From the sequence record OR258281.1: a stretch of 64,000 bases of DNA. One strand, 5' to 3'. Below, piece after piece: positions 38,700-64,000 of the stretch. The notes beneath the pieces were generated by a model. The model saw only the letters and a list, made by a program, of their open reading frames with translations, had not been told where the DNA came from and searched no databases. The position numbers and the translations under genes are program-made. Each line of letters opens with the position of its first letter. Position 1 is the stretch's first letter.

Positions 38700-41600
38700 A
38701 TGTACGTTGACGGATATTTAGATAGAAAGAAAGAAATTCTATACGTTGCTGAAAGAATTAACGGACGTAGAATTTTAGTACAGCATTCTCCTGTTTATGA
38801 ATTTTATGTAGAAAGCCAAAGTGGTTCATATAGTACTATTAACGGTACATCAGCAAACAAATACGATTTCGCTCGTTCAGGTGAAATGCGTAGAAGTGTT
38901 GATCAATATAAAGCACAAGGTGCTAAGGTATTTGAATCAGATTGTAACGTAGTATTCAAAACATTAGCTAAACACTACATGGGTGATTCTTCCCCGGATC
39001 TACACAAAGTATTTTTCGATATTGAAACCGACTTTGACAAGAAACGTGGATTCGCCCCGCCAGATGATCCATTCCATCGCATTACTGCAATTTCTTTATA
39101 TCAAAGCTGGACTGATACTGCTTATGTTCTAGTTCTTCCACCAGAAGAAATGAACGAATCAGACGCACGTGATATTATTAATCAGGTACAACAAGAACAC
39201 CCTGAAGGTGTTATTATCATGTACCAAGATGAAAAAGAAATGCTTGAGTACTTCTTTGAACTTATTGAAGATGCTGATGTACTTTCAGGATGGAACAGCG
39301 AATTCTTTGATATTCCATATATGGTAAACCGTGTTCGTCGTATCTTCAGTGATGCAATGACTACACGTTTTTGTCTATGGGGTAAAAAACCATTACCGCG
39401 TGAAGTAGATAACTACGGTAAGACCATGGTATCATATGACCTATCTGGTCGTGTACACCTAGATTATCTTGCTTTATATAAGAAACATGCCGGACAGGTA
39501 AAAGCATCTTATAAACTGGATGATATTGGTTTAGAAGAAACTGGTGAAAAGAAAGTAGAATATGAAGGTTCGTTAGATAATTTATATCGTTCTAACTTTA
39601 AACGCTTCGTAGAATATTCATTACAAGATACCGTACTACTTAAAAAGATTGATAAAAAGCTTGATTATATCAGTCTGCATAACCGACTAGCACATCAGGA
39701 ATGTGTATTAATCGGTACTACTATGGGTTCTGTTGCTCTAATCGATACTGCTATTATTAACCTCGCACACAAACGCGGTGAAGTAGTATTTGATAAGAAA
39801 CCACAAGAAGATGACGTAGATGATAATGATCTGCAATTTGAATTTGAGTCTGATGACGATGATGAAGATTCAGGTTCATCGGAAATGTCTTCTGCTAAAG
39901 CTGCTGGTGCATGGGTACAAGATCCAGTTACTGGACTAATCGATGCATTAGGATGTGTGGACTTCAACAGTCTATATCCTTCGGTACTTCGTTCATTAGG
40001 CATGAGTACTGAGTGTATTCTAGGACAGATTCGTACTGATTACACCGATAAACTACTTGAAGAACGTGTACAGCAACAGAAAGCAAAATCTAAATCTAAA
40101 AAATTCGAACCTGATTGGACAGAAGCATGGCATGGTCTATTCAGTACTGTAGAATTCAGTAAAGTTCAGGAAAAAAGTACTGAAGTAATGACTGTGGATT
40201 TAGAAGACGGACAGAGTTTTAATTGTACTGGTGAAGAACTGTACAATATGATTTACTCTGAAGGTTCTAATATCGTTCTGAGTGCTAACGGTACTCTGTT
40301 CGATAAAAATAAGAGCGGCGTTATTCCTGAAATCCTGAGTACTTGGTATTCAGAACGTAAGGCAATGCAGAAAGCTAAACTTGATTTTAAACACTTCAGT
40401 ACTGATGGTTTACGCATTAACGATCCAGATGATATTAATGTAGATGTAGAGTTGTTAAAGACTTACATTCATAATAATGGTCAGGTTAAAATTAAGCGTA
40501 CTAATTTAGATACTGAATGTCCAGCTTTCGCATTACGTGCTGCACTTAAAAAGAATAATCTTGAACTAGCAGGTTCAATTATCAGCAGTAACTTTGAATT
40601 GCACGATAATGTGATTAAGTGTACTAATGATGATCTTGAATATTGCAAAAACCAGAGTTCTTTTTGGGATCAGAACCAGCTAATTCGTAAAATTCTTCTT
40701 AACTCCCTGTACGGTGCACTACTAAACAAGGGTTCACGTTTCTATGATAAACGTTTAGGTCAGTCTGTAACATTAACTGGTCGTAGCATGGCTAAACACC
40801 TTGCTAGTAAAATCAATGAAGTTTGTGGTGAAGAATATATTCATCATGGTGGTGCGGTTGTTTATGGTGATACGGACTCAGTATATTTCAGTGTTGCATA
40901 TCTGATGAAATTGCGTGGATTGGAATTTGATCTAAGTAAAGAACAGATTGTAGAGATGTACCAGAATATCGGTAAAATCGTAGGTGAGTCATTCCCTTCA
41001 TTCATGAATACTACTTTTAATACAGGAATGGAAAAAGGTGCAATCATTGGTGCTGATCTGGAAATGGTTGGTTCACGTGGTTTATTCCTGAAGAAGAAGC
41101 GTTATGCAATTCTTAAGTATTGGGAAGATGGTTTCCGTTTAGATACTGGTGGTAAGCCTGGTAAAATTAAGGCAATGGGTCTGGAAATCAAACGTTCAGA
41201 TACTGCTAAGTACATCCAGAAGTTTTTAGAAGAAATTCTAATTAACCTTCTATGTGGTGAGAAAGAAGAGAACCTACGTGAACAGGTACGCGAATTTAAG
41301 AAGGGTTTCCGTAAAATGGAATCATTCGATAAAGGAGCACCGAAAACCGTTAAGAAGCTCTCTCATTGGTCAGAAGAGTATGAGAAGACAGGTAAATGTA
41401 GTGTAGGTCATGTTCTGGCTGCAATCCAGTGGAACAAACTACGTAACATCTATGATGACAAACTAGTACCAGAAGCAACTGACGGTACTAAAGTAGTTGT
41501 CTGCACTCTAAAGAGCAACATATATGGTATCAAGAGTATTGGATATCCTATCGAATGCAGAGAGTATTTGCCACAGTGGTTCCTTGATCTACCATTTGAT

Positions 41601-41723
41601 GATGATGACATGGAACAGAAAGTACTGGTTAAAAAGATGGAAAACATTTTTGGCATTATTGACATGGATATTGGTATTCATGAAACAGAAGTAATGGCAG
41701 AAGGTGGATTCCTTGAATGGTAA
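38700..41723 (+). CDS. gp43: Family B DNA polymerase (T4 gp43-like), 1007 aa
   Basis: ExoI FDIET, ExoII GWNSEFFDIPY, ExoIII YSLQD, motif A DFNSLYPS, B KILLNSLYG, C YGDTDS. Confidence 0.97.
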   Translation: MYVDGYLDRKKEILYVAERINGRRILVQHSPVYEFYVESQSGSYSTINGTSANKYDFARSGEMRRSVDQYKAQGAKVFESDCNVVFKTLAKHYMGDSSPDLHKVFFDIETDFDKKRGFAPPDDPFHRITAISLYQSWTDTAYVLVLPPEEMNESDARDIINQVQQEHPEGVIIMYQDEKEMLEYFFELIEDADVLSGWNSEFFDIPYMVNRVRRIFSDAMTTRFCLWGKKPLPREVDNYGKTMVSYDLSGRVHLDYLALYKKHAGQVKASYKLDDIGLEETGEKKVEYEGSLDNLYRSNFKRFVEYSLQDTVLLKKIDKKLDYISLHNRLAHQECVLIGTTMGSVALIDTAIINLAHKRGEVVFDKKPQEDDVDDNDLQFEFESDDDDEDSGSSEMSSAKAAGAWVQDPVTGLIDALGCVDFNSLYPSVLRSLGMSTECILGQIRTDYTDKLLEERVQQQKAKSKSKKFEPDWTEAWHGLFSTVEFSKVQEKSTEVMTVDLEDGQSFNCTGEELYNMIYSEGSNIVLSANGTLFDKNKSGVIPEILSTWYSERKAMQKAKLDFKHFSTDGLRINDPDDINVDVELLKTYIHNNGQVKIKRTNLDTECPAFALRAALKKNNLELAGSIISSNFELHDNVIKCTNDDLEYCKNQSSFWDQNQLIRKILLNSLYGALLNKGSRFYDKRLGQSVTLTGRSMAKHLASKINEVCGEEYIHHGGAVVYGDTDSVYFSVAYLMKLRGLEFDLSKEQIVEMYQNIGKIVGESFPSFMNTTFNTGMEKGAIIGADLEMVGSRGLFLKKKRYAILKYWEDGFRLDTGGKPGKIKAMGLEIKRSDTAKYIQKFLEEILINLLCGEKEENLREQVREFKKGFRKMESFDKGAPKTVKKLSHWSEEYEKTGKCSVGHVLAAIQWNKLRNIYDDKLVPEATDGTKVVVCTLKSNIYGIKSIGYPIECREYLPQWFLDLPFDDDDMEQKVLVKKMENIFGIIDMDIGIHETEVMAEGGFLEW

Positions 41724-54688: not shown

Positions 54689-54982
54689 ATGTCAATTTCT
54701 AAAGCCAAAAACGTTTTGAACAGATATTGGATTTCGTATGAAGAAATGAATGAAGCACTTAAAGTTCAAGGCCCATCTTATCATTACGTAATTGAATATG
54801 ATGATGAGGAATCTAAATTCAGTATTGTTACTTATGGCAATGATGATAATGATAATTCAGTACTGGATTTCTCAATGTCAATATACCCTATGCAGTTCCA
54901 TGGCACTGAATTCTATTTTGAGAAATGGTTCAAAGGTGTTAAGGAAGTAATAGTACATTATTATATGGAAAAGAATCGATGA
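54689..54982 (+). CDS. Hypothetical protein, 97 aa
   Basis: ORF track; C-terminal LDFSMSIYP resembles the motif of 23642/24184. Confidence 0.7.
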   Translation: MSISKAKNVLNRYWISYEEMNEALKVQGPSYHYVIEYDDEESKFSIVTYGNDDNDNSVLDFSMSIYPMQFHGTEFYFEKWFKGVKEVIVHYYMEKNR

Positions 54983-55782
54983 ATAAAATAGAAGAATTTT
55001 TATACTGGTTGGGAGTAGTTGATACTGAGACTACCGGAACGACTAATACAGATGATGTTATTGAATTCAGTATTATGATGAATCAAGGGAGTGAACCTAC
55101 GTACTTTACATCCTATTTTAAAACCAATATTCCGGTTCCTCCTGAGAGTTCAGCAGTACATTGGATTTCAGACGAGGATTTAACAGATGCACCTACCTTT
55201 GAAAGTGCTGCAAGTACAATAGGTATGATTATGGACCAAATGCAGTATTTGGTGGGTCATAATGTTGAATTTGACCGCCAGATGATTGCACAGAATTATG
55301 CACGTAAAAACATTACAGTGCCAAATTCAGTACTGAATAAACAGCAATGGATTTGTACCCACAAAATAGCAAAGAAACTATTTGGACAAGACACCATTGA
55401 ATTTGATAATTTTAAACTAGGGTACTTGTGGTTTAAATTAGGTCTGAATAAATTAAGTACCAGAAAGATTAATCCTCATAAAGCTGAAGATGATGTGTAT
55501 ATGTGTTATATGCTACTAATTAGTCTTTTGAATGAATGTATTAATCGTGGTATTGTTGACCCCAATAAGGATATTGGAGTACAACTACATAAATTCAGCA
55601 CTACCCCAAATATTCTAGAAGTTTATCCTTATGGAAAATATAAGGGTACTAAGTTCAAAGAAGTATTCGAAAAAGATCGCCGTTACTTAGAATGGATGGT
55701 TACCACAAGTGACCTTTTAAATCCTGAGAACTCAAGCTTTGATGAAGACTTTGCTGCGACTATTGAATATTATCTAAGTTAA
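54979..55782 (+). CDS. DEDDh 3'-5' exonuclease (ExoX/DnaQ-like), 267 aa
   Basis: VDTETTG, GHNVEFD, HKAEDDV, C-terminal PYGKYKG..F.EV...D..YLEW. Confidence 0.9.
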   Translation: MNKIEEFLYWLGVVDTETTGTTNTDDVIEFSIMMNQGSEPTYFTSYFKTNIPVPPESSAVHWISDEDLTDAPTFESAASTIGMIMDQMQYLVGHNVEFDRQMIAQNYARKNITVPNSVLNKQQWICTHKIAKKLFGQDTIEFDNFKLGYLWFKLGLNKLSTRKINPHKAEDDVYMCYMLLISLLNECINRGIVDPNKDIGVQLHKFSTTPNILEVYPYGKYKGTKFKEVFEKDRRYLEWMVTTSDLLNPENSSFDEDFAATIEYYLS

Positions 55783-55797
55783 TACAGGAGCCACGGA

Positions 55798-57264
55798 ATG
55801 GCAAAGCTAATCCTCATGGATGAGGTGAATTGTAAATTTGAAGATCTTGATCCAGCAGTTCGCCAGAAGTTAATTAAAGCGGTATCATATGTTTTACCAC
55901 ATGCACGTTTCACCCCACAAGGGCGTATGGGACGCTGGGATGGAAAGGTAAACTTTATGAATATGGGCGGTAAAACTTATTTCCATATGCTGGAAAAGTT
56001 GCTACCCATTCTTGAAGAAAATAAAGTACAATTAGAGATTGAAGATCTACGTCCTCAATACAATTTCGAATTTGATGAAATTGATAAAGACTTCTTTAAT
56101 TATGTCCAATTCCCACCGGGTCATCATATGGAAGGTAAGAGTATTACCCTCCATGATCATCAGGTAGAAGCGGTTAATGCATGTCTGGCAAACCGTCATG
56201 GTTTGTTACTTGCAAGTACCAGTGCTGGTAAAACTCTAATTACTGCTGCACTATCTAAAAAGGTTGAGAAGTACGGAAGAAGTATTGTAATTGTACCTAA
56301 TACAGATCTGGTACAACAAACTTTCAATGATTATGAAATGCTGGGCTTAGATGCTGGCGTATTTTATGGTTCCAAGAAAGAGTTTGGACATAAACATACT
56401 ATTACAACATGGCAGTCACTAAACTCTTTGTGGAAGAAGACAAAGAAAGGTGATATTCAGATGGATGAAAATGATGTTCATGACTTCATTCTTGATGTAT
56501 GTTGTGTAGTAGTAGATGAATGTCATACTTCAAGTGCCGATGCATTACAGGCAATCTTAGGCGAAGTAATGTGTAACATTCCTATTCGCTGGGGATTAAC
56601 TGGTACTATTCCAAAAGATGAAGTACTAGCCAACAAGATTAAATGTAATGTGGGTAACGTAATCTATACTATCAGTGCAAAAGATTTACAGGATAAAAAG
56701 ATCCTTAGTACTTGTAACATCAATGCTATTCGTCTTAAAAGTTCTCTTAAGTTCGGTACTTATCCTGAAGAACTAAAATGGTTAGTTACTAACCGAGAAC
56801 GGATGAAGTATATAGCTTCATTAATTGAGGCTATATCAAATTCAGGTAACACTTTAGTACTGGTTGACCGCCTAGAGGCTGGTGAACTTTTATGTGAGTT
56901 CCTTAATATACCTAAAAGTGAATTTGTTCGTGGTGATACGAACAAGAAAGATCGCGAAAGTCAGTACGGTGAAATACGCTGGGCTGATAATAAAATACTT
57001 ATAGCAACGTTTGGCGTTGCGAGTACTGGTATTAGTATTAGTCGTTTATATAATGTTGTTTTGATTGAACCAGGCAAAAGCTTTGTTCGTACCATTCAAA
57101 GTATTGGTCGTGGACTGCGTAAAGCACAGGACAAAGACCATGTTGAAATTTACGATATTTGTGGCACTAATAAATATACCGCTCGACATTCCAATGAGCG
57201 TATTAAGTACTACAAAGAAGTACAATATCCTTATAACGTTATTACAGTAAAGGATTGGGAATAA
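55798..57264 (+). CDS. uvsW: SF2 DNA helicase UvsW, 488 aa
   Basis: STSAGKT, VVVDECH, GLTGT, GVASTGI, QSIGRGLR. Confidence 0.95.
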   Translation: MAKLILMDEVNCKFEDLDPAVRQKLIKAVSYVLPHARFTPQGRMGRWDGKVNFMNMGGKTYFHMLEKLLPILEENKVQLEIEDLRPQYNFEFDEIDKDFFNYVQFPPGHHMEGKSITLHDHQVEAVNACLANRHGLLLASTSAGKTLITAALSKKVEKYGRSIVIVPNTDLVQQTFNDYEMLGLDAGVFYGSKKEFGHKHTITTWQSLNSLWKKTKKGDIQMDENDVHDFILDVCCVVVDECHTSSADALQAILGEVMCNIPIRWGLTGTIPKDEVLANKIKCNVGNVIYTISAKDLQDKKILSTCNINAIRLKSSLKFGTYPEELKWLVTNRERMKYIASLIEAISNSGNTLVLVDRLEAGELLCEFLNIPKSEFVRGDTNKKDRESQYGEIRWADNKILIATFGVASTGISISRLYNVVLIEPGKSFVRTIQSIGRGLRKAQDKDHVEIYDICGTNKYTARHSNERIKYYKEVQYPYNVITVKDWE

Positions 57265-57295
57265 TCTTAACAATAAAGAACATCTAAAATATTCA

Positions 57296-57324
57296 TGAAA
57301 TAAAAACAATAGATGTTCTATACT
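57296..57324 (+). promoter_or_regulatory. Early/middle promoter TGAAAT-N17-TATACT
   Basis: tgaaat aaaaacaatagatgttc tatact. Confidence 0.8.
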
Positions 57325-57342
57325 AATAAAGGAAGCACACAG

Positions 57343-57765
57343 ATGAGTTTACGTTCAAGCCTCGCTATCATTTCTGATAATGGCAATAAATTAGATGAAG
57401 TTGATACACTTCTTACTGATGATAGTATTTTAGATGACATGGTATTGTCTCTGGATTATGTTAGCGAACTGGATAAAGATGATACACGCGTTTATCGCTG
57501 TGAAACCAATGAAGATTCATGGGTTAACATCTATGAAGTACTTAAACGCTTGGATGGTAATGCTAGTGATATAGTATATGCAAGCACTGACAGTAAAACT
57601 TTTGTTGAAGTGATTAGTACTTCTGGTTTATTTGATGCATACGTTGATACAAATTTAGACAAGATTCAGGAACTGTGCGAAACATACGGTTTAGAATTCT
57701 TCGGTGCTGAAGATGAATATGACTATGATTCAGAAGATGAAGACGATCACGACGATTGGAACTAA
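57343..57765 (+). CDS. Acidic hypothetical protein, about 140 aa
   Basis: Start refined to 57343 (AAGGA SD; the track start lies inside the promoter); C-terminus EDEYDYDSEDEDDHDDWN. Confidence 0.75.
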   Translation: MSLRSSLAIISDNGNKLDEVDTLLTDDSILDDMVLSLDYVSELDKDDTRVYRCETNEDSWVNIYEVLKRLDGNASDIVYASTDSKTFVEVISTSGLFDAYVDTNLDKIQELCETYGLEFFGAEDEYDYDSEDEDDHDDWN

Positions 57766-57768
57766 TTG

Positions 57769-57801
57769 AAGTCCCTGTGCTGAGAAGTGCAGGGACTTTT
57801 T
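57769..57801 (+). terminator. Intrinsic terminator
   Basis: aagtccctgtgc-tgagaa-gtgcagggactt-ttt. Confidence 0.8.
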
Positions 57802-57816
57802 ACATGGAGTAGTAAT

Positions 57817-58317
57817 ATGAATGTTTTAACACCCGAAAATTATGCGTTTGATATGAATCAGGTAACTGATACTGAGCCGGATGCAATGTTCTGTGTTCTG
57901 GACTTATCAGATATTGATGAATCTGATTATTTCTTTAAACACATCCTCAATACCGTATCGTTTAATAGTATCAGTGCTGAATTGCAAGTTGGTACTGAAC
58001 GTATACAGGTTCCTCTAAGCTGGCAAATCCTAGTAGGAGATGAAGATACTGGAATGGTGGAAATGTGCACTATTGAAAATCTTCTTAATATGAAAGAGCC
58101 AAAAGCTTATGTAATTAATCCGCTACGTTCACTATATGCTAAATTTGAAGACATTAAAGTACTTCATGTTTATACATTGCCTATCAAGTGGCAGATACCT
58201 TATCTTCAAAAGAAAAATCTGTTAGCAGTACCTTTACGTAATGGTAATAATCCACCGTGTGTATTCTTTGCTGACGAAAACGAAAAAATTCAGGATCTAT
58301 ATCTAGGACTTGCGTAA
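57817..58317 (+). CDS. Conserved hypothetical protein, about 166 aa
   Basis: Start refined to MNVLTPEN behind GGAG; first gene of a coupled operon ending in the DnaE-like gene. Confidence 0.75.
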   Translation: MNVLTPENYAFDMNQVTDTEPDAMFCVLDLSDIDESDYFFKHILNTVSFNSISAELQVGTERIQVPLSWQILVGDEDTGMVEMCTIENLLNMKEPKAYVINPLRSLYAKFEDIKVLHVYTLPIKWQIPYLQKKNLLAVPLRNGNNPPCVFFADENEKIQDLYLGLA

Positions 58318-59150
58318 TGATAAACTTTGATGATGTACCATTAGATGACGAATTTTCCAAGAATGAGAAACTTAAACTTGATATTGGTGTAGTACTTCAG
58401 AATATTGATACTGCTAACTTTAGTTTCTACAATGAATTATCAGAAGAAGAACGTAAACTGTTTACTCCTTATACAGTCCAACGATGGGTAGGCTCACTTG
58501 ATGATGCAATCCAGGTAACGTATAATGCTAAAAGTTTAGAATCTATTTTTGGTAAATGGAAAGAAGGTGGTAAAGCTGCTCTCAATGAATTCATTGAAGA
58601 ATTCAATGGTTCAACTATGAAATGTTCATCAGTAGTCAAATATGAACATGCTAAGTTTGATTGGCGTTTTCGTTTCAGTATGGAATCTAATTCTGCTGCA
58701 CTAGAATTCATTACTTCCATGAAAGAGTTCGCTCCAAATGCACGTTCTGAAATTGTTTCACTCACCAGTACTGAAGTAGTTAAAAACAATGTTCAGATGC
58801 TTAATGAATTGGTAAACGTACACTTTTGGGAATTACATAAGTACCCTGAACTGGTATATAAACTTTTGTGTCTAGTATCGGTACTAAGCGATACTAATAA
58901 GAAAGATCGTTCGTGGCTTCCATTCAGCAAGAACAATAAGAAACCGGATGCAGAGATCTCTAAGGTACTACGTACATCACTAAGTGCATTAACATCATTA
59001 CAGCTTGAAAATTCAGAATATAAAATTCTTGTCCGTGAAACGGAAGTTGATAAATTTGATCTTATGCTTACTGAACACGGTTATCAGGAAAATGATAGAA
59101 AAGCATTGTTGAAGAAATTTAAATCGGAAAAAGAGAAATATGGCAAATGA
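58317..59150 (+). CDS. Possible clamp-loader small subunit (gp62-like) with internal insertion, 277 aa
   Basis: FYNELSEEERKLFTPY.VQRW...LNELVN.HFWELHKYPEL..KLL...RSWLPF pattern recalls gp62-like proteins (inference). Confidence 0.45.
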   Translation: MINFDDVPLDDEFSKNEKLKLDIGVVLQNIDTANFSFYNELSEEERKLFTPYTVQRWVGSLDDAIQVTYNAKSLESIFGKWKEGGKAALNEFIEEFNGSTMKCSSVVKYEHAKFDWRFRFSMESNSAALEFITSMKEFAPNARSEIVSLTSTEVVKNNVQMLNELVNVHFWELHKYPELVYKLLCLVSVLSDTNKKDRSWLPFSKNNKKPDAEISKVLRTSLSALTSLQLENSEYKILVRETEVDKFDLMLTEHGYQENDRKALLKKFKSEKEKYGK

Positions 59151-59838
59151 TTTTGAATGCCGGTTCTGTTCTAAGAAATTTAAAAGGGAGCAAACGGTAC
59201 TATCTCATAAATGTTTAAAACGTGACCGTTATAATGAGAAAGATACCAGAAAGATGAAAGTTGCATATATGATGTGGAAAGAATATATGCAATACCATAA
59301 GTTTAAGATTCCCGCTAAAGTAGTACAGGCTGGCGATGAGTACTTGTACTTTATTAATAGCTCAGTATTCAATGAATTTGAGAAATTTGCAGAATATGTA
59401 ACTCAGAATGATATTTTTAAACCTGATGAATTTATTACTCATGTAATAAAATCAGGAATAAATGCCAGAGATTGGTGTACCTTTAAGGTACATCAGGATT
59501 GGGTAATTAAGTATACTAGAAATGAACACCCGCGTAGCGGCATAGAACGCAGTATAAGAGCCTTTGCTGATTGGGAAGCCCTAACAGGTCAACCATGGAA
59601 TACGTTCTTCAGTAGTGCTACGCTGGTTCGTGTAATCATGTGGTTTGAGAGTGGGAAGCTTTCACCATGGATTATCTATGCAAGTAATACTGCCGATGAA
59701 TTACTGAGTAGAGTAAGTGATTCAGAATATTCACATCTTATACCTTATATCGATCATACAGTTTGGATTCCTAAGATTAGTGCGTACCGAACTGATGTAG
59801 AAAGTATTAAACAAGAACTAAAAGGATTTGGTTTATAA
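59140..59838 (+). CDS. Zinc-finger-containing hypothetical protein, 232 aa
   Basis: N-terminal CRFCSKKFKREQTVLSHKC (C2H2/C2HC-like). Confidence 0.75.
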   Translation: MANDFECRFCSKKFKREQTVLSHKCLKRDRYNEKDTRKMKVAYMMWKEYMQYHKFKIPAKVVQAGDEYLYFINSSVFNEFEKFAEYVTQNDIFKPDEFITHVIKSGINARDWCTFKVHQDWVIKYTRNEHPRSGIERSIRAFADWEALTGQPWNTFFSSATLVRVIMWFESGKLSPWIIYASNTADELLSRVSDSEYSHLIPYIDHTVWIPKISAYRTDVESIKQELKGFGL

Positions 59839-60158
59839 TGGACAACAATAATATTAAGTCACAAGTTTATTCACAAGAGAATAATCCGGTACAACCTAAA
59901 GATAACTCATCTTCATTTCTAAAACGTGGTTCGGTAACCAGTATTACTATTGGTGATAAAACACTTGAAGTACTTGATAAAGATTTTGCCAAAGCGGTAC
60001 AGAATAAAATTAATGAGCTGCAAGAGAAAAATACTGAAACTCAACGTGCGTTTCGTTTACAAAGTGCAAAGTTGGCACAGCTTGAATCCGATTTGGCTAC
60101 ATTGAAACAAATTGTAAAATCTATGGGACAGGATATACTTAAAAATAACTGGAAATAG
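59838..60158 (+). CDS. Hypothetical coiled-coil protein, 106 aa
   Basis: TAATG coupling; heptad-rich C-terminal half. Confidence 0.7.
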   Translation: MDNNNIKSQVYSQENNPVQPKDNSSSFLKRGSVTSITIGDKTLEVLDKDFAKAVQNKINELQEKNTETQRAFRLQSAKLAQLESDLATLKQIVKSMGQDILKNNWK

Positions 60159-60159
60159 T

Positions 60160-60783
60160 ATGGAATACAGAAAGGCCAGAACTGACATTGATATAGACTT
60201 ACGCAGCAGAGATGATGCACTTGCCGTTATTAATTGTGTAAGAAGTACTGAGAAAATTACAGAGGAAGGGTTAGTGCCTCACAAAACCGGAATACATTTA
60301 GATAATATTCCGGTAGATCCATGTACTGGTTTTGCTGCAATAGCGTACAAGGAAGCTGAGGCACTAGGTTATCAGAAAATAGATTTACTAAATGTAAGTG
60401 CGTATGATAATGTAAAGGACAGGGAGCATTTGAAAAGGTTAGCGAGTACTGAACCTAATTGGGAGTTGTTGTTATATCCTGAGATATGCGAACAATTGTT
60501 TCAGCTTAAGAATTATTGTTCATTGCTGAATGTCTGGAAACCTACGAGTATTGATGAATTGGCTATGATATTGGCTATGATACGTCCGGGGAAGAGAAAT
60601 TGTCAAAGTTTGTATAATTGGCAGGAAGTTCGGGAGCAGATTTGGGATTATAGTACTGTAGCAACTGATGCAAATGGTAAAAAGCTTAACTACTTTAAAA
60701 AACCACACGCTTATAGTTACAGTCTCTTGATTATTGTACAACTTAATGCGTTAGTAGAAAAACTTACTTCTTCCGCTTCTTAA
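60160..60783 (+). CDS. Miniature DNA polymerase III alpha (DnaE/C-family)-like protein, 207 aa
   Basis: TDIDIDL, HKTG, GYQKIDLL, LAMIRPG and YFKKPHAYSY match the DnaE PDFDVDF, HAGG, GLVKFDFL, ALFRPGP and YGFNKSHSAAY motifs in order. Confidence 0.85.
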   Translation: MEYRKARTDIDIDLRSRDDALAVINCVRSTEKITEEGLVPHKTGIHLDNIPVDPCTGFAAIAYKEAEALGYQKIDLLNVSAYDNVKDREHLKRLASTEPNWELLLYPEICEQLFQLKNYCSLLNVWKPTSIDELAMILAMIRPGKRNCQSLYNWQEVREQIWDYSTVATDANGKKLNYFKKPHAYSYSLLIIVQLNALVEKLTSSAS

Positions 60784-61129
60784 GAACGATATTACGTCTT
60801 TTGATTCGTTTAGTAGGTAGATCTGATAAAGATATTAATGGGCCGTGTACGTGAATACAACTATCAGTATTAAATCTGATTGTGTATTTTTCGAAGCGTT
60901 CCATTTCTTCACGCATAAACAGGGAAATTGGAATCCCTCTATTACTTTGCCACCACCATTGTTCAGCGAATTCCAGAAGTGATTTCTGTTCTTCAGGTGG
61001 CATATGGTTTAAACAATACAATGAAATATATTGTTTGCTTTTGATTTTTAATATACCTACATATTCAGTATCATTATGAATGAGTACTGTAACATATGGC
61101 ATTCTAGACTTAATATCCATATAATCCAT
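60764..61129 (-). CDS. Conserved hypothetical protein, 121 aa
   Basis: WWWQSNRGIPISLF motif; TATAAATA late promoter at 61164-61171 on the minus strand. Confidence 0.75.
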   Translation of the reverse strand: MDYMDIKSRMPYVTVLIHNDTEYVGILKIKSKQYISLYCLNHMPPEEQKSLLEFAEQWWWQSNRGIPISLFMREEMERFEKYTIRFNTDSCIHVHGPLISLSDLPTKRIKRRNIVLKKRKK

Positions 61130-61131
61130 CC

Positions 61132-61139
61132 AATAAATA
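61132..61139 (+). promoter_or_regulatory. Late promoter AATAAATA for 61183
   Basis: 44 nt upstream of ATG 61183 (AGGTGG SD). Confidence 0.65.
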
Positions 61140-61163
61140 AAGTAAATAACGATTTTACATTTT

Positions 61164-61171
61164 TATTTATA
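61164..61171 (-). promoter_or_regulatory. Late promoter TATAAATA for 61129
   Basis: tatttata on + strand; face-to-face with the 61132 promoter. Confidence 0.7.
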
Positions 61172-61182
61172 GGTGGAAAATA

Positions 61183-62157
61183 ATGTCTAGTAATGGAGTA
61201 TATACATACCCACATAACCAAGAAGCTACATTAGGTAACTTCAGTATGCCTTTTAATAATAAAAGACTGGTTATATATAAGGGTGCAAACAATCCTTTAA
61301 GTTTTACAATTCATAATGCTGATGGTAAGTACACATTACTAAAAGATAATGAATACGTGGTTTTTAGTATCTTCGATACAAGAAACAATACAAAGATTTT
61401 CGAATCTCGTTTAGAGAAAACAGCACCATCATGGGTATCTGAAGCTGGTCAGGCTAGACCTACCATTTCAATGCAGAACAAAGTATATTACACTGGTGTT
61501 GTGCCAGCAGGTATTATACAGGATCTAAGCCCCGGTACGAAATATCGCTGGAGTATTATTAAAGTACAAGAAGATGGAAATAATCTAGTACCTAATACAC
61601 AGTATCTGTATACTGGTCTGAACTATGAAGCAAGTGCTGAATTAGAAATTAGTACTCTTGCTGCACCAGTGTTTATTGGTAGTGTAGAACTTAGTGAACA
61701 AGCTAATGCGTCATTCCTTCCAATCAAAGATAAAGAGCGTCAGGATATTTCTAAAGGTGTTATTGGTGAATATGATGTACTTGGTAGTACTCCAGTACCA
61801 TCAGGTGTTCAATATGGTTTAGTTGATGGTCTAAGTACTATTGCTTTCTATTTTGATAACTTTATAGGACGATACCAGCTTCAGGGTTGTCTGAGTAATG
61901 ATGTACCAAAAGATGAAGAGAACTATAAGTGGTTCAATATTAATCTTTGTGGTTGTGATTACATCGGAAATGAACTTGATGATAAAGGCGTTCCAATCCC
62001 AATCAATGGTATAGTACCTTACAACTTCAAGGGTAATTTTATGTGGGTAAGAGTGGTAGTATGTATTCCACCTTTCATCCGTACAATTACTCCTGTAACT
62101 GTCAGAAAAGAATACAATCCATATAACACGATGCCTAAAGTACTAGTTCGAAGATAA
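61183..62157 (+). CDS. Putative virion structural protein, 324 aa
   Basis: Late promoter; beta-rich; LVIYKGANNPLSFTIHNADG resembles BppU-type N-terminal domains (weak inference). Confidence 0.55.
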   Translation: MSSNGVYTYPHNQEATLGNFSMPFNNKRLVIYKGANNPLSFTIHNADGKYTLLKDNEYVVFSIFDTRNNTKIFESRLEKTAPSWVSEAGQARPTISMQNKVYYTGVVPAGIIQDLSPGTKYRWSIIKVQEDGNNLVPNTQYLYTGLNYEASAELEISTLAAPVFIGSVELSEQANASFLPIKDKERQDISKGVIGEYDVLGSTPVPSGVQYGLVDGLSTIAFYFDNFIGRYQLQGCLSNDVPKDEENYKWFNINLCGCDYIGNELDDKGVPIPINGIVPYNFKGNFMWVRVVVCIPPFIRTITPVTVRKEYNPYNTMPKVLVRR

Positions 62158-62158
62158 T

Positions 62159-62187
62159 TGAAACACTATTCTAATGTGTTCTATACT
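62159..62187 (+). promoter_or_regulatory. Early/middle promoter TGAAAC-N17-TATACT (primase-helicase)
   Basis: tgaaac actattctaatgtgttc tatact. Confidence 0.88.
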
Positions 62188-62216
62188 ATCATGTGTAATG
62201 CTAAGGATAGTAGAAA

Positions 62217-63242
62217 ATGAATAATGTATTAACAATAATAGCGGGACTCATGCATAACCCATGTCCACCAATTGGTAGATGGGTAAAACGTGACTGTCCC
62301 GTTTGTCTTAATGGTGCTTCAGGAAGGGTACGCGGATCATATATTTTCGATAATGACAGTTTCGCTTTCCACTGTTTCAACTGTGATTTTAAAACTAACT
62401 GGAAACCCGGTTATAATATAAATCAGAAGATGATAGACTTCCTTCAAAAAGTCGGTGCTAGTTCCAATGAAATAATGCAGCTAAGTATGATGGCTAAAGA
62501 TATTATTGAAAACGGAAATTTTGAAAAGCCCGAACTTACCAATTCTGCAATATATCAGAAAATAACACAACGTCAGTTACCAAGTACTGCAAAGTCGTTT
62601 CTGGAATGGGGAAACTCAAATCCTCCACCTGACTTTGTTAAGGTACTTAATCATGTGTTTGCAAGAAACCCATATTTATTTGACTTAGATTTATACTGGA
62701 CGCCGGATAAAAATAACGATTTAAACTTTCGTTATCTTCTACCTTACTATATGAATGGTGAGATAGTTGGTTATTCTGGTCGAGATACAAGACCTTACAG
62801 TAAGTTAAAGTATTACAATCAGATTAGTACTAGCACTTTTTATAACTTTGACCTTCTTAATGATCCTAACATCAAAACTCTTTTTGTTACTGAAGGATTA
62901 TTCGATGCTGCTCTTATGGGTGGACTAGGAAGTAATAACTACAAGATGACGGATATCCAGATTGCACAGTTATTACATGCAAAGGAACGTGGTAAAAGAA
63001 TAGTACTAGTACCTGACCGTGATAAGAATGGTATTGAATCTATTAATCAAGCACTGGAACATGGATTTGAAGTTTCATTGCCAGATTGGGGAACAAAGAG
63101 AACATCAAATGGAGTTGAATTTATAAAGGACTTTGAAGAAGCCAGCAAAACATACGGAAGATTGTTTTGTACTTTACTTCTTCACAAGAGTATTTGTAAT
63201 TCAGAATTTGAAACTAAAGTATTAATGAATAAATGGATTTAA
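62217..63242 (+). CDS. gp61: DNA primase (T4 gp61/DnaG-like), 341 aa
   Basis: Zinc ribbon CPVC...FHCFNC; TOPRIM VTEGLFDA and PDRD. Confidence 0.92.
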   Translation: MNNVLTIIAGLMHNPCPPIGRWVKRDCPVCLNGASGRVRGSYIFDNDSFAFHCFNCDFKTNWKPGYNINQKMIDFLQKVGASSNEIMQLSMMAKDIIENGNFEKPELTNSAIYQKITQRQLPSTAKSFLEWGNSNPPPDFVKVLNHVFARNPYLFDLDLYWTPDKNNDLNFRYLLPYYMNGEIVGYSGRDTRPYSKLKYYNQISTSTFYNFDLLNDPNIKTLFVTEGLFDAALMGGLGSNNYKMTDIQIAQLLHAKERGKRIVLVPDRDKNGIESINQALEHGFEVSLPDWGTKRTSNGVEFIKDFEEASKTYGRLFCTLLLHKSICNSEFETKVLMNKWI

Positions 63243-63254
63243 AAGGAAGAAAAG

Positions 63255-64000
63255 ATGATCTCACAGGAAGTGAAAAACTATGATCCAAAATTCCAGCAGT
63301 TTATGCTGAGTGTTATGTTAAACGAACCTGAAATTTTTGTTCGTTGTCAGGGTATTATTAAACCTGAATATTTTGATAAAGCTTATAAGCCTGTTGTGAA
63401 CTTCGTACTTGAATATGCTGACAAGTACCGTACCCTTCCATCTCTGAAAGAAATTGAAGTTAATACTACAGCAGCATTTGAAGCAGAAGTAATTAAGAAG
63501 GAACACCGTCAAGGACACCTTGATAGTATTGAAAGTTTCTGTCGTCATAAAGCACTAGAGAATGCAATCCAGGAAGGAATGAAATGCGTTCAGGAACGTA
63601 AGTACGGTATGTTAGAAGTACTGGTCAAAGAAGCAATGCAGATTTCATTGCAGAATGACTTAGGTACTAACTATTTTGAAGATCCTGAAGGTCGTATTCG
63701 TGCACTATTTGACGAACAGGGTACTATCAGTACTGGCTGGATTGATGTTGATAAACGTCTATTCGGTGGTTTCGGTCCAGGTGAATTAGAAATCTTCCTT
63801 GCACCTTCTGGTTGTGGTAAGTCAATGCTCATGCAGAACCTTGCTGTTAACTTCAGTGCACGAATGATGAACGGCGTATACATTTCTTTGGAACTATCAG
63901 AGAACCTTGTAAACAGCCGTATTGACAGTATGATGCTTGATCGCAGCAAGAAGAATATTCAATCCAATATTGAAGACGTTGCTGCTGAGATTAAAGTACT
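63255..64000 (+). CDS. gp41: Replicative helicase (T4 gp41/DnaB-like), 5' part; not in ORF track
   Basis: MISQEVKNYD...ISTGWIDVDKRLFGGFGPGELEIFLAPSGCGKS (Walker A)...YISLELSE; runs off the window. Confidence 0.93.
   Translation, partial: MISQEVKNYDPKFQQFMLSVMLNEPEIFVRCQGIIKPEYFDKAYKPVVNFVLEYADKYRTLPSLKEIEVNTTAAFEAEVIKKEHRQGHLDSIESFCRHKALENAIQEGMKCVQERKYGMLEVLVKEAMQISLQNDLGTNYFEDPEGRIRALFDEQGTISTGWIDVDKRLFGGFGPGELEIFLAPSGCGKSMLMQNLAVNFSARMMNGVYISLELSENLVNSRIDSMMLDRSKKNIQSNIEDVAAEIKV

Follow-up and report, generated by a model that had tools for sequence, protein, structure and literature searches.

The DnaE-like protein XaC1_367 of Xanthomonas phage XaC1 as the probable C-terminal unit of a split minimal DNA polymerase III alpha

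Xanthomonas phage XaC1 (OR258281.1; 348,967 bp) encodes a 207-residue protein, XaC1_367, whose identification as a palm and finger homolog of C-family DNA polymerases, the type of the DNA polymerase III (Pol III) alpha subunit, is supported by the evidence set out below. The gene lies in a stretch of 64,000 nucleotides, about record positions 186001-250000, which we analysed as a whole and refer to as the window. Our reading, which we consider probable, is of a miniature C-family nucleotidyltransferase in two pieces, with XaC1_367 as its C-terminal subunit and a second, distantly encoded protein, XaC1_411, as the other; the two would rebuild an active site that adds deoxynucleoside triphosphates (dNTPs) and serves in repair, gap filling or primer extension. 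A split minimal Pol III alpha of this kind is already known, having been described from sequence in 2021 by Iyer, Anantharaman, Krishnan, Burroughs and Aravind (Viruses 13:63; PMC7824862). To that description we add the junction between the halves at the level of residues and folds (393/394 in E. coli numbering), the positions of two gaps relative to DnaE, a natural fusion of the halves, a conserved gene module around the C-terminal gene and an occurrence in a 141-kb phage that is not a jumbo phage. Throughout, 'C-unit' denotes XaC1_367 and its homologs, and 'N-unit' denotes XaC1_411 and its homologs.

The C-unit: family, conserved residues and fold

XaC1_367 occupies positions 246160-246783 of the record, where it is annotated as a 'hypothetical protein'; the annotated product is 100% identical to the open reading frame (ORF) in the window. 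An earlier, sequence-only reading of the window had pointed to five DnaE motifs in order within this 207-residue ORF, and they are present as described: DIDID (residues 9-13), H-K-T-G (41-44), KIDLL (73-77), MIRPG (140-144) and KKPHAYSY (180-187). The gene and its motifs are as follows, with E. coli numbering verified on the dnaE translation (D401, D403 and D405 in PDFDVDF; K553 and D555 in VKFDFLGL) and with parts of the fingers given as E. coli residue ranges rather than as named subdomains.

60160-60783, + strand: XaC1_367, probable C-terminal unit of a split minimal Pol III alpha, 207 residues, ATG start; corresponds to E. coli alpha 394-784 with gaps at the thumb and in part of the fingers
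60184-60198, + strand: DIDID strand; D9, D11 and D13 are the equivalents of E. coli D401, D403 and D405, of which D401 and D403 are catalytic metal ligands
60280-60291, + strand: H41-K-T-G44 palm motif, just past the missing thumb; proposed equivalent of E. coli H511-A-G-G514 from motif order and the range of the structural alignment
60376-60390, + strand: KIDLL strand; profile alignment to E. coli 539-641 pairs K73 with K553 and D75 with D555, the third catalytic aspartate
60577-60591, + strand: MIRPG finger motif at the place of E. coli ALFRPG 636-641; about 100 residues of DnaE are missing after it
60697-60720, + strand: start of the KKPHAYSY helix; from profile alignment and conservation, K180 is matched to E. 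coli K758 and H183 to H760 (the presumptive steric gate), with P182 at the position of S759

The protein belongs to a well-populated family. In PHROGs it matches phrog_11778 ('DNA polymerase') with an expectation (E) value of 1.5e-89, and a search of 1.84 billion representative proteins returned 268 relatives at E<=1e-3, nearly all of them 180-215 residues long. A tblastn search gave 96 matches in phage genomes, all of them Rak2-like or related large myophages; the nearest relatives are 121Q, PBECO4, GAP32, CBB, RaK2, XbC2, Atu_ph07 and PA5oct. More than 585 stretches in IMG/VR encode a C-unit relative, an abundance that amounts to hundreds of environmental phage contigs.

Curated models capture this family poorly. 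XaC1_367 scores 14.9 bits against PF17657 (DNA_pol3_finger), under the Pfam cut-off of 22, with no other Pfam match, and a scan against NCBIfam gave no match; 42 of 95 C-unit homologs reach PF17657 at E<=0.01. When the family profile of the C-unit was compared with all PDB sequences, Pol III alpha chains were the only matches (E 8e-6). This alignment places residues 55-140 on E. coli 539-641, with R-P-G at 639-641, and residues 151-181 on 739-770.

Conservation was counted in an alignment of 95 representative C-units, which are just 27-47% identical to XaC1_367. D9, D11, D13, K73, D75 and P143 are invariant (95/95). H41, G44, R142, K145, K180 and H183 are each conserved in at least 90% of the sequences, with individual counts of 94/95 for H41, 92/95 for G44, 94/95 for R142 and 92/95 for H183. 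D401, D403 and D555 form the absolutely conserved catalytic triad of the C family (PMC3919608), and the claim of the sequence-only reading that all three aspartates are retained thus holds across the homologs as well as in XaC1_367 itself. E. coli H760 is the presumptive steric gate against ribonucleotides, and substitutions of the adjacent S759 alter base and sugar selectivity (PMC8485763). Among the 95 representatives, the position equivalent to S759 is occupied by serine in 74, alanine in 16, glycine in three and cysteine in one; proline occurs only in XaC1 and XbC2 (P182, codon 60703-60705).

The structure of the C-unit was predicted by AlphaFold2 with the 95-sequence alignment and compared with known structures using Foldseek and VIA-align. 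The model is of high confidence (predicted local distance difference test score [pLDDT] 96.6; predicted template modelling score 0.88) and places the DxDxD motif on a strand at residues 10-14 and K73 and D75 on a strand at 73-78. The best 11 Foldseek matches are all Pol III alpha or PolC chains, the best with E 3.8e-4 and probability 1.00. The top 15 VIA-align matches are likewise all C-family polymerases, and the next unrelated match has a Z-score of 3.9. Against the Thermus aquaticus (Taq) enzyme (3e0d), 200 of the 207 residues align to chain residues 456-841 with Z 9.8 and a root-mean-square deviation (rmsd) of 4.3; Z is 9.7 against PolC (3f2c) and 8.4 against E. coli alpha (4jom, chain 394-784). 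The DnaE-type palm expected from the motifs is therefore present in the model.

The 207 residues of XaC1_367 cover a span for which E. coli alpha needs 391, and two gaps can be located. D13 and H41 are 28 residues apart, compared with 106 for E. coli D405 and H511, which leaves a 78-residue gap at the position of the thumb. A pairwise alignment of residues 1-85 with E. coli 393-565 scores 40.6, against a mean of 29.5 and a maximum of 47.4 for shuffled sequences; as this is not significant alone, the thumb gap rests on the motif spacing and the structural ranges. The second gap, of about 100 residues, falls within the fingers between about E. coli 641 and 739.

The protein begins only eight residues ahead of the first catalytic aspartate, at the equivalent of E. 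coli 393/394, and its C-terminus corresponds to about E. coli 784. It has no PHP domain, thumb, full fingers, HhH, clamp-binding motif or OB. The Pfam results, the alignment gaps and the position of the C-terminal end support what had been read from the sequence about the PHP, HhH, OB and clamp-binding regions. The palm is incomplete as well, lacking its first half: XaC1_367 has neither the GRGS nucleotide-binding element nor the palm helices that precede the catalytic strand.

A distant partner gene and a natural fusion

The missing half of the palm is encoded elsewhere in the genome. A scan of the whole of OR258281.1 with PF07733 gave a single match, at 279767-279994 (35.3 bits against a cut-off of 23.9), which falls in XaC1_411. 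This gene encodes 172 residues at record positions 279482-280000 (L002:1216-1734), is annotated 'DNA polymerase' and lies outside the window on the same strand as XaC1_367, about 33 kb downstream. The sequence-only reading had found no partner fragment, which is true of the window but not of the genome. It had also raised the possibility of one subunit of a split polymerase; we agree with the split, but the partner is the distant XaC1_411 and not one of the neighbouring ORFs.

The N-units are as sharply defined as the C-units. Eighty of them, read out from environmental loci, are 157-202 residues long and all stop at ...EFL[KR]; in XaC1_411, the C-terminal ...HEFLKW aligns to E. coli ...FERFL392. 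In the N-unit alignment of 83 sequences, which was built from these 80, the motif W-G-V-G-R-G-S is invariant (83/83). The GRGS element is thus absent from XaC1_367 and present in XaC1_411, so that the C-family core is complete only as a two-gene system.

For the N-unit structure, we used an AlphaFold2 model of an environmental homolog (L216:3001-3519) that is 39% identical to XaC1_411. Residues 79-173 of this model (pLDDT 89.2) superpose on E. coli alpha 279-393 with Z 10-11 and rmsd 2.1-2.6; the match to Mycobacterium tuberculosis DnaE1 reaches Z 12.2, and above Z 2.7 there are only C-family polymerases. On E. coli alpha, the N-unit model covers 279-393 and the C-unit model continues from 394 to 784, so that the two neither overlap nor leave residues to spare and meet at 393/394. 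Ranges that abut in this way, with no extra residues, leave no room for an intein, so that any assembly of the two proteins must be non-covalent. The N-unit also begins with ~78-94 residues that precede the part corresponding to the DnaE palm. This extension is conserved across the family, and in the model it forms a small strand-plus-helix domain.

The two units occur in the same phages. In the phage collection, the C-unit is found in 96 records and an N-unit match in 98, and the two are never adjacent. Tallies by genus agree within one (C-unit/N-unit): Escherichia 34/34, Pseudomonas 11/11, Klebsiella 11/10, Erwinia 8/8, Salmonella 8/8, Xanthomonas 4/4 and Yersinia 4/4. A few weak entries in the N-unit list come from phages for which no C-unit is listed; one of these entries carries the annotation Pol III alpha. 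Among uncultivated genomes that carry a C-unit and are at least 90% complete, a distant N-unit is present in three of three. The distance between the genes ranges from 14 to 244 kb overall. Xoo-sp13 and RAS14 have the shortest (14 kb), Rak2-like isolates (31-34 kb) and PA5oct (44 kb) are intermediate, and the genes are much further apart in SCTP-2 (116 kb) and Atu_ph07 (182 kb). No N-unit was found within 10 kb of any of 80 C-units, and no C-unit within 3 kb of any of 80 N-units.

In one case, the two halves form a single chain. P0099, a protein of 375 residues from an ENA metagenome contig (L004, positions 1066-2193), is an N+C fusion in the expected order with a join of about 10 residues. 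Identity is 38% between XaC1_411 and its N-half (E 4e-24), which retains the conserved N-terminal extension, and 35% between XaC1_367 and its C-half (E 4e-27). Both PF07733 and the alignment to E. coli alpha 319-417 run continuously across the junction. In a quick tree, the C-half clusters with stand-alone C-units on an ordinary branch (Shimodaira-Hasegawa-like approximate likelihood ratio test support 91). A search of IMG/VR with P0099's own peptides found no relative, and none of 594 relatives has a match that reaches into the N-half.

Could XaC1_367 nevertheless act alone as a minimal nucleotidyltransferase? The sequence-only reading had offered a stand-alone enzyme as one option, and the idea draws on the presence of three catalytic aspartates and finger motifs in one protein and on the confident in silico fold of XaC1_367 by itself. 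We regard it as extremely improbable. What XaC1_367 lacks, namely the GRGS element and the helices in the first half of the palm, is invariant in a separate protein family that co-occurs with the C-unit in every near-complete genome checked, and the only longer form that we found is the N+C fusion. It is also very improbable that the protein is a non-catalytic remnant, a pseudoenzyme that merely binds DNA or a replisome partner. The extreme reduction of the protein and the lack of a demonstrated activity would fit such a remnant, but the catalytic residues of both halves are invariant across sequences that are just 30-50% identical, which is not expected of a decayed active site.

Taken together, the co-occurrence, the abutting structural ranges and the natural fusion point to physical assembly of the two units. 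We propose that XaC1_367 and XaC1_411 associate non-covalently to give one Pol-beta-like palm and one finger subdomain, with an active site that would exist only in the heterodimer. To this site, XaC1_367 would contribute the residues it carries: D9, D11, D75, K73 and the finger helix with the steric-gate H183. Retention of the steric-gate histidine and of the complete triad makes the addition of dNTPs to a DNA 3' end the most likely reaction. It would presumably be distributive, because the thumb, the further fingers, the HhH, the clamp-binding motif and the PHP domain are all lacking.

The system may also extend to smaller phages. Alishewanella phage Slickus01 (L253), whose genome of 141.6 kb is below the jumbo threshold, encodes a C-unit at 30% identity. 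In its sibling phage Slicko01, there is an N-unit-like match at 79029-79253, at a distance of about 10 kb from the equivalent position. A genome >200 kb thus does not seem to be a requirement for the split enzyme.

Gene neighbourhood and possible role

XaC1_367 stands in a replication and repair module, and the window also encodes a full family-B polymerase. The neighbouring features are as follows.

38700-41723, + strand: full family-B DNA polymerase with its own exonuclease domain, XaC1_342; presumed main replicase
54979-55782, + strand: ExoX/DnaQ-type 3'-5' exonuclease (RNase_T and ExoX-like_C), head of the module
55798-57264, + strand: UvsW-like helicase, head of the module
57787-59150, + strand: two coupled ORFs with a stop/start overlap, matching phrog_11279 and phrog_11758 in PHROGs (the second at 58317-59150)
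59140-59838, + strand: translationally coupled ORF of 232 residues with a single N-terminal C2HC zinc finger (C7, C10, H23 and C25 invariant); conserved neighbour of the C-unit
59838-60158, + strand: coiled-coil ORF of 106 residues, with its stop 1 nucleotide before the C-unit ATG; found only in close relatives (XbC2)
60764-61129, - strand: convergent ORF of 121 residues that overlaps the 3' end of the C-unit gene by 20 nucleotides; the most constant neighbour
62217-63242, + strand: primase, downstream in the same conserved module
63255-63998, + strand: DnaB-type helicase, downstream in the same conserved module; starts at 63255 and runs off the window

The ORFs that start at 57787, 58317, 59140, 59838 and 60160 form a chain, up to 60783, in which stops and starts overlap or abut and the C-unit gene comes last. 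The sequence-only reading had called this a coupled operon ending in the C-unit gene and had placed ExoX, UvsW, primase, helicase and a full B-family polymerase nearby; all of this is found in the window. Its 'gp62-like' label for the ORF at 58317-59150 finds no backing, as Pfam, NCBIfam and PHROGs return no clamp-loader family for it. The annotated clamp loader of XaC1 is XaC1_420 (record 284033-284986), which lies about 4 kb downstream of the N-unit gene. A promoter and terminator scan of 55500-62300 gave 31 promoter-like sites against 30 by chance, and nothing that bounds the operon.

The order UvsW, ORF 57787, ORF 58317, zinc-finger ORF, C-unit, convergent small ORF, structural protein, primase and DnaB is kept, at 38-46% identity, in most of the 80 environmental (IMG/VR) loci in which the neighbours of the C-unit were counted. 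It is also found in Atu_ph07 and PA5oct, with an insertion in SCTP-2, and partly in Xoo-sp13 and Slickus01. The zinc-finger ORF is directly upstream of the C-unit in 67 of these 80 loci and in Atu_ph07, PA5oct and SCTP-2, and the convergent ORF is present in 78 of the 80 and in Atu_ph07, PA5oct, SCTP-2 and Xoo-sp13. The profile of the zinc-finger ORF matches eukaryote-type C2H2 fingers (e.g. Gfi-1, 9e-6); its other ~200 residues are conserved and unmatched. In the convergent ORF, a W-W-x-x-x-N-R-x-x-P-I motif is invariant and the tail is basic (KRIKRR); our searches returned no PDB sequence match, no Pfam family and no known fold for it.

Within this module of UvsW, primase and DnaB, and alongside the family-B replicase, the two-piece enzyme would probably serve in repair, gap filling or primer extension. 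The ExoX-like exonuclease at the head of the module is a candidate for proofreading in trans, for a polymerase with neither a PHP domain nor an epsilon-binding site.

A different reaction is conceivable for the assembled halves. They could form a non-templated enzyme, such as a terminal transferase, an enzyme that nucleotidylates a protein or a primer, or one that makes a nucleotide signal in phage-host conflict. Many such reactions are run by nucleotidyltransferases of the Pol-beta fold, and the absence of the duplex-gripping thumb, most of the fingers, the HhH and the clamp-binding parts would suit them, as would the presence of a complete family-B replicase in the same genome. We nevertheless judge this unlikely, as both the steric-gate histidine and the C-family finger helix that contacts the incoming dNTP are conserved, and as the gene is placed between UvsW and primase/DnaB in distant phages. 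Nor was any context of defence or counter-defence genes seen.

The constancy of the neighbours raises another alternative, that the mini polymerase needs subunits besides the N-unit, supplied by the C2HC zinc-finger protein, ORFs 57787 and 58317 or the convergent 121-residue ORF. Their adjacency to the C-unit in 67-78 of the 80 environmental loci, Atu_ph07, PA5oct and SCTP-2, while the N-unit moves over 14-244 kb, speaks for this, as do the translational coupling of the ORFs and the plausibility of a zinc finger as a nucleic-acid binder. Against it, none of the neighbour ORFs resembles a part of Pol III in scans of Pfam, NCBIfam and PHROGs or in profile searches of the zinc-finger and 121-residue ORFs; core gene order is generally conserved in these phages; and no zinc-finger homolog is detectable beside the C-unit in Xoo-sp13 or Slickus01. 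We therefore hold a requirement for neighbour subunits to be quite unlikely. A broader speculation, and something of a long shot, is that the palm-plus-one-finger heterodimer of about 380 residues might be the catalytic heart of a modular, multi-subunit polymerase, to which these same neighbours would give a grip on DNA in trans. Together with primase and DnaB, this could make an 'initiator' polymerase that extends primers and hands over to the family-B replicase.

We return to the two-piece, dNTP-adding enzyme, which is our preferred reading, and several points weigh against it. With the thumb and most of the DNA-contacting parts of the fingers absent, its hold on a primer-template is in doubt. 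XaC1 and XbC2 have a proline beside the steric gate, which is unique among the 95 representatives. The fusion P0099 is a singleton cluster from one metagenome contig of 2.4 kb, and a second fusion was not found among the ~590 IMG/VR relatives of either half. The conserved gene order may be mere inherited core synteny. Finally, our literature search found no report in which activity, a complex or expression had been shown for either unit.

Comparison with known systems

PMC7824862 describes a minimal Pol III alpha core that is specific to phages and belongs to group 2.2 (Rak2-like) jumbo phages. This core is split into an N-terminal nucleoside triphosphate-binding protein and a C-terminal protein that binds Mg and the DNA template, with genes far apart and beside a family-B polymerase. 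Its authors suggested cooperation with the family-B enzyme in strand synthesis or repair and proposed the core as a model of the ancestral enzyme. XaC1_367 and XaC1_411 correspond to this definition, as two distantly encoded units on the same strand in a Rak2-like, T4-related jumbo myophage with a family-B polymerase; XaC1_367 is the C-terminal protein of the same system, and we see nothing different in kind. The genome papers on CBB and Atu_ph07 had noticed a truncated 'Pol III alpha' of 172 residues, and the PA5oct omics paper makes no mention of the C-unit gene.

An active pair would be the smallest C-family polymerase by a wide margin, with about 380 residues in two chains compared with more than 1100, and a natural experiment on the minimal needs of Pol III alpha. 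It would also mean that a second polymerase, of bacterial type, works within a replisome that is otherwise of the T4/archaeo-eukaryotic type.

With bacterial DnaE (E. coli 2HNH and 4JOM; T. aquaticus 2HPI and 3E0D; M. tuberculosis DnaE1 5LEW), the phage proteins share the Pol-beta-like palm, the residues D401, D403, D555 and K553, the RPG motif and the helix that carries K758 and H760, and the C-unit aligns to these structures with Z 8.4-9.8 over 192-200 residues. Unlike bacterial DnaE, the phage palm is divided between two proteins, which total about 380 residues compared with 1160 and have no C-terminal domain. PolC of Firmicutes (Geobacillus kaustophilus 3F2B and 3F2C; 9QPC and 9QRN) has the same palm and finger core, on which the C-unit aligns at 966-1299 (Z 9.7) and the N-unit at ~823-965 (Z 8-11.6). 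In contrast to the phage pair, PolC is one chain with an inserted proofreading exonuclease, a PHP domain, an OB and the full DNA-binding apparatus.

Cyanobacterial DnaE is likewise a C-family polymerase encoded by two distant genes, whose products carry split-intein sequences and are spliced to full-length DnaE. The phage pair differs from this arrangement, as the N-unit ends at ...EFL[KR] and the C-unit begins eight residues before the first aspartate, with no extra residues on either side. The fusion P0099 is collinear with DnaE over the junction, like the phage pair, and differs from it in being a single chain.

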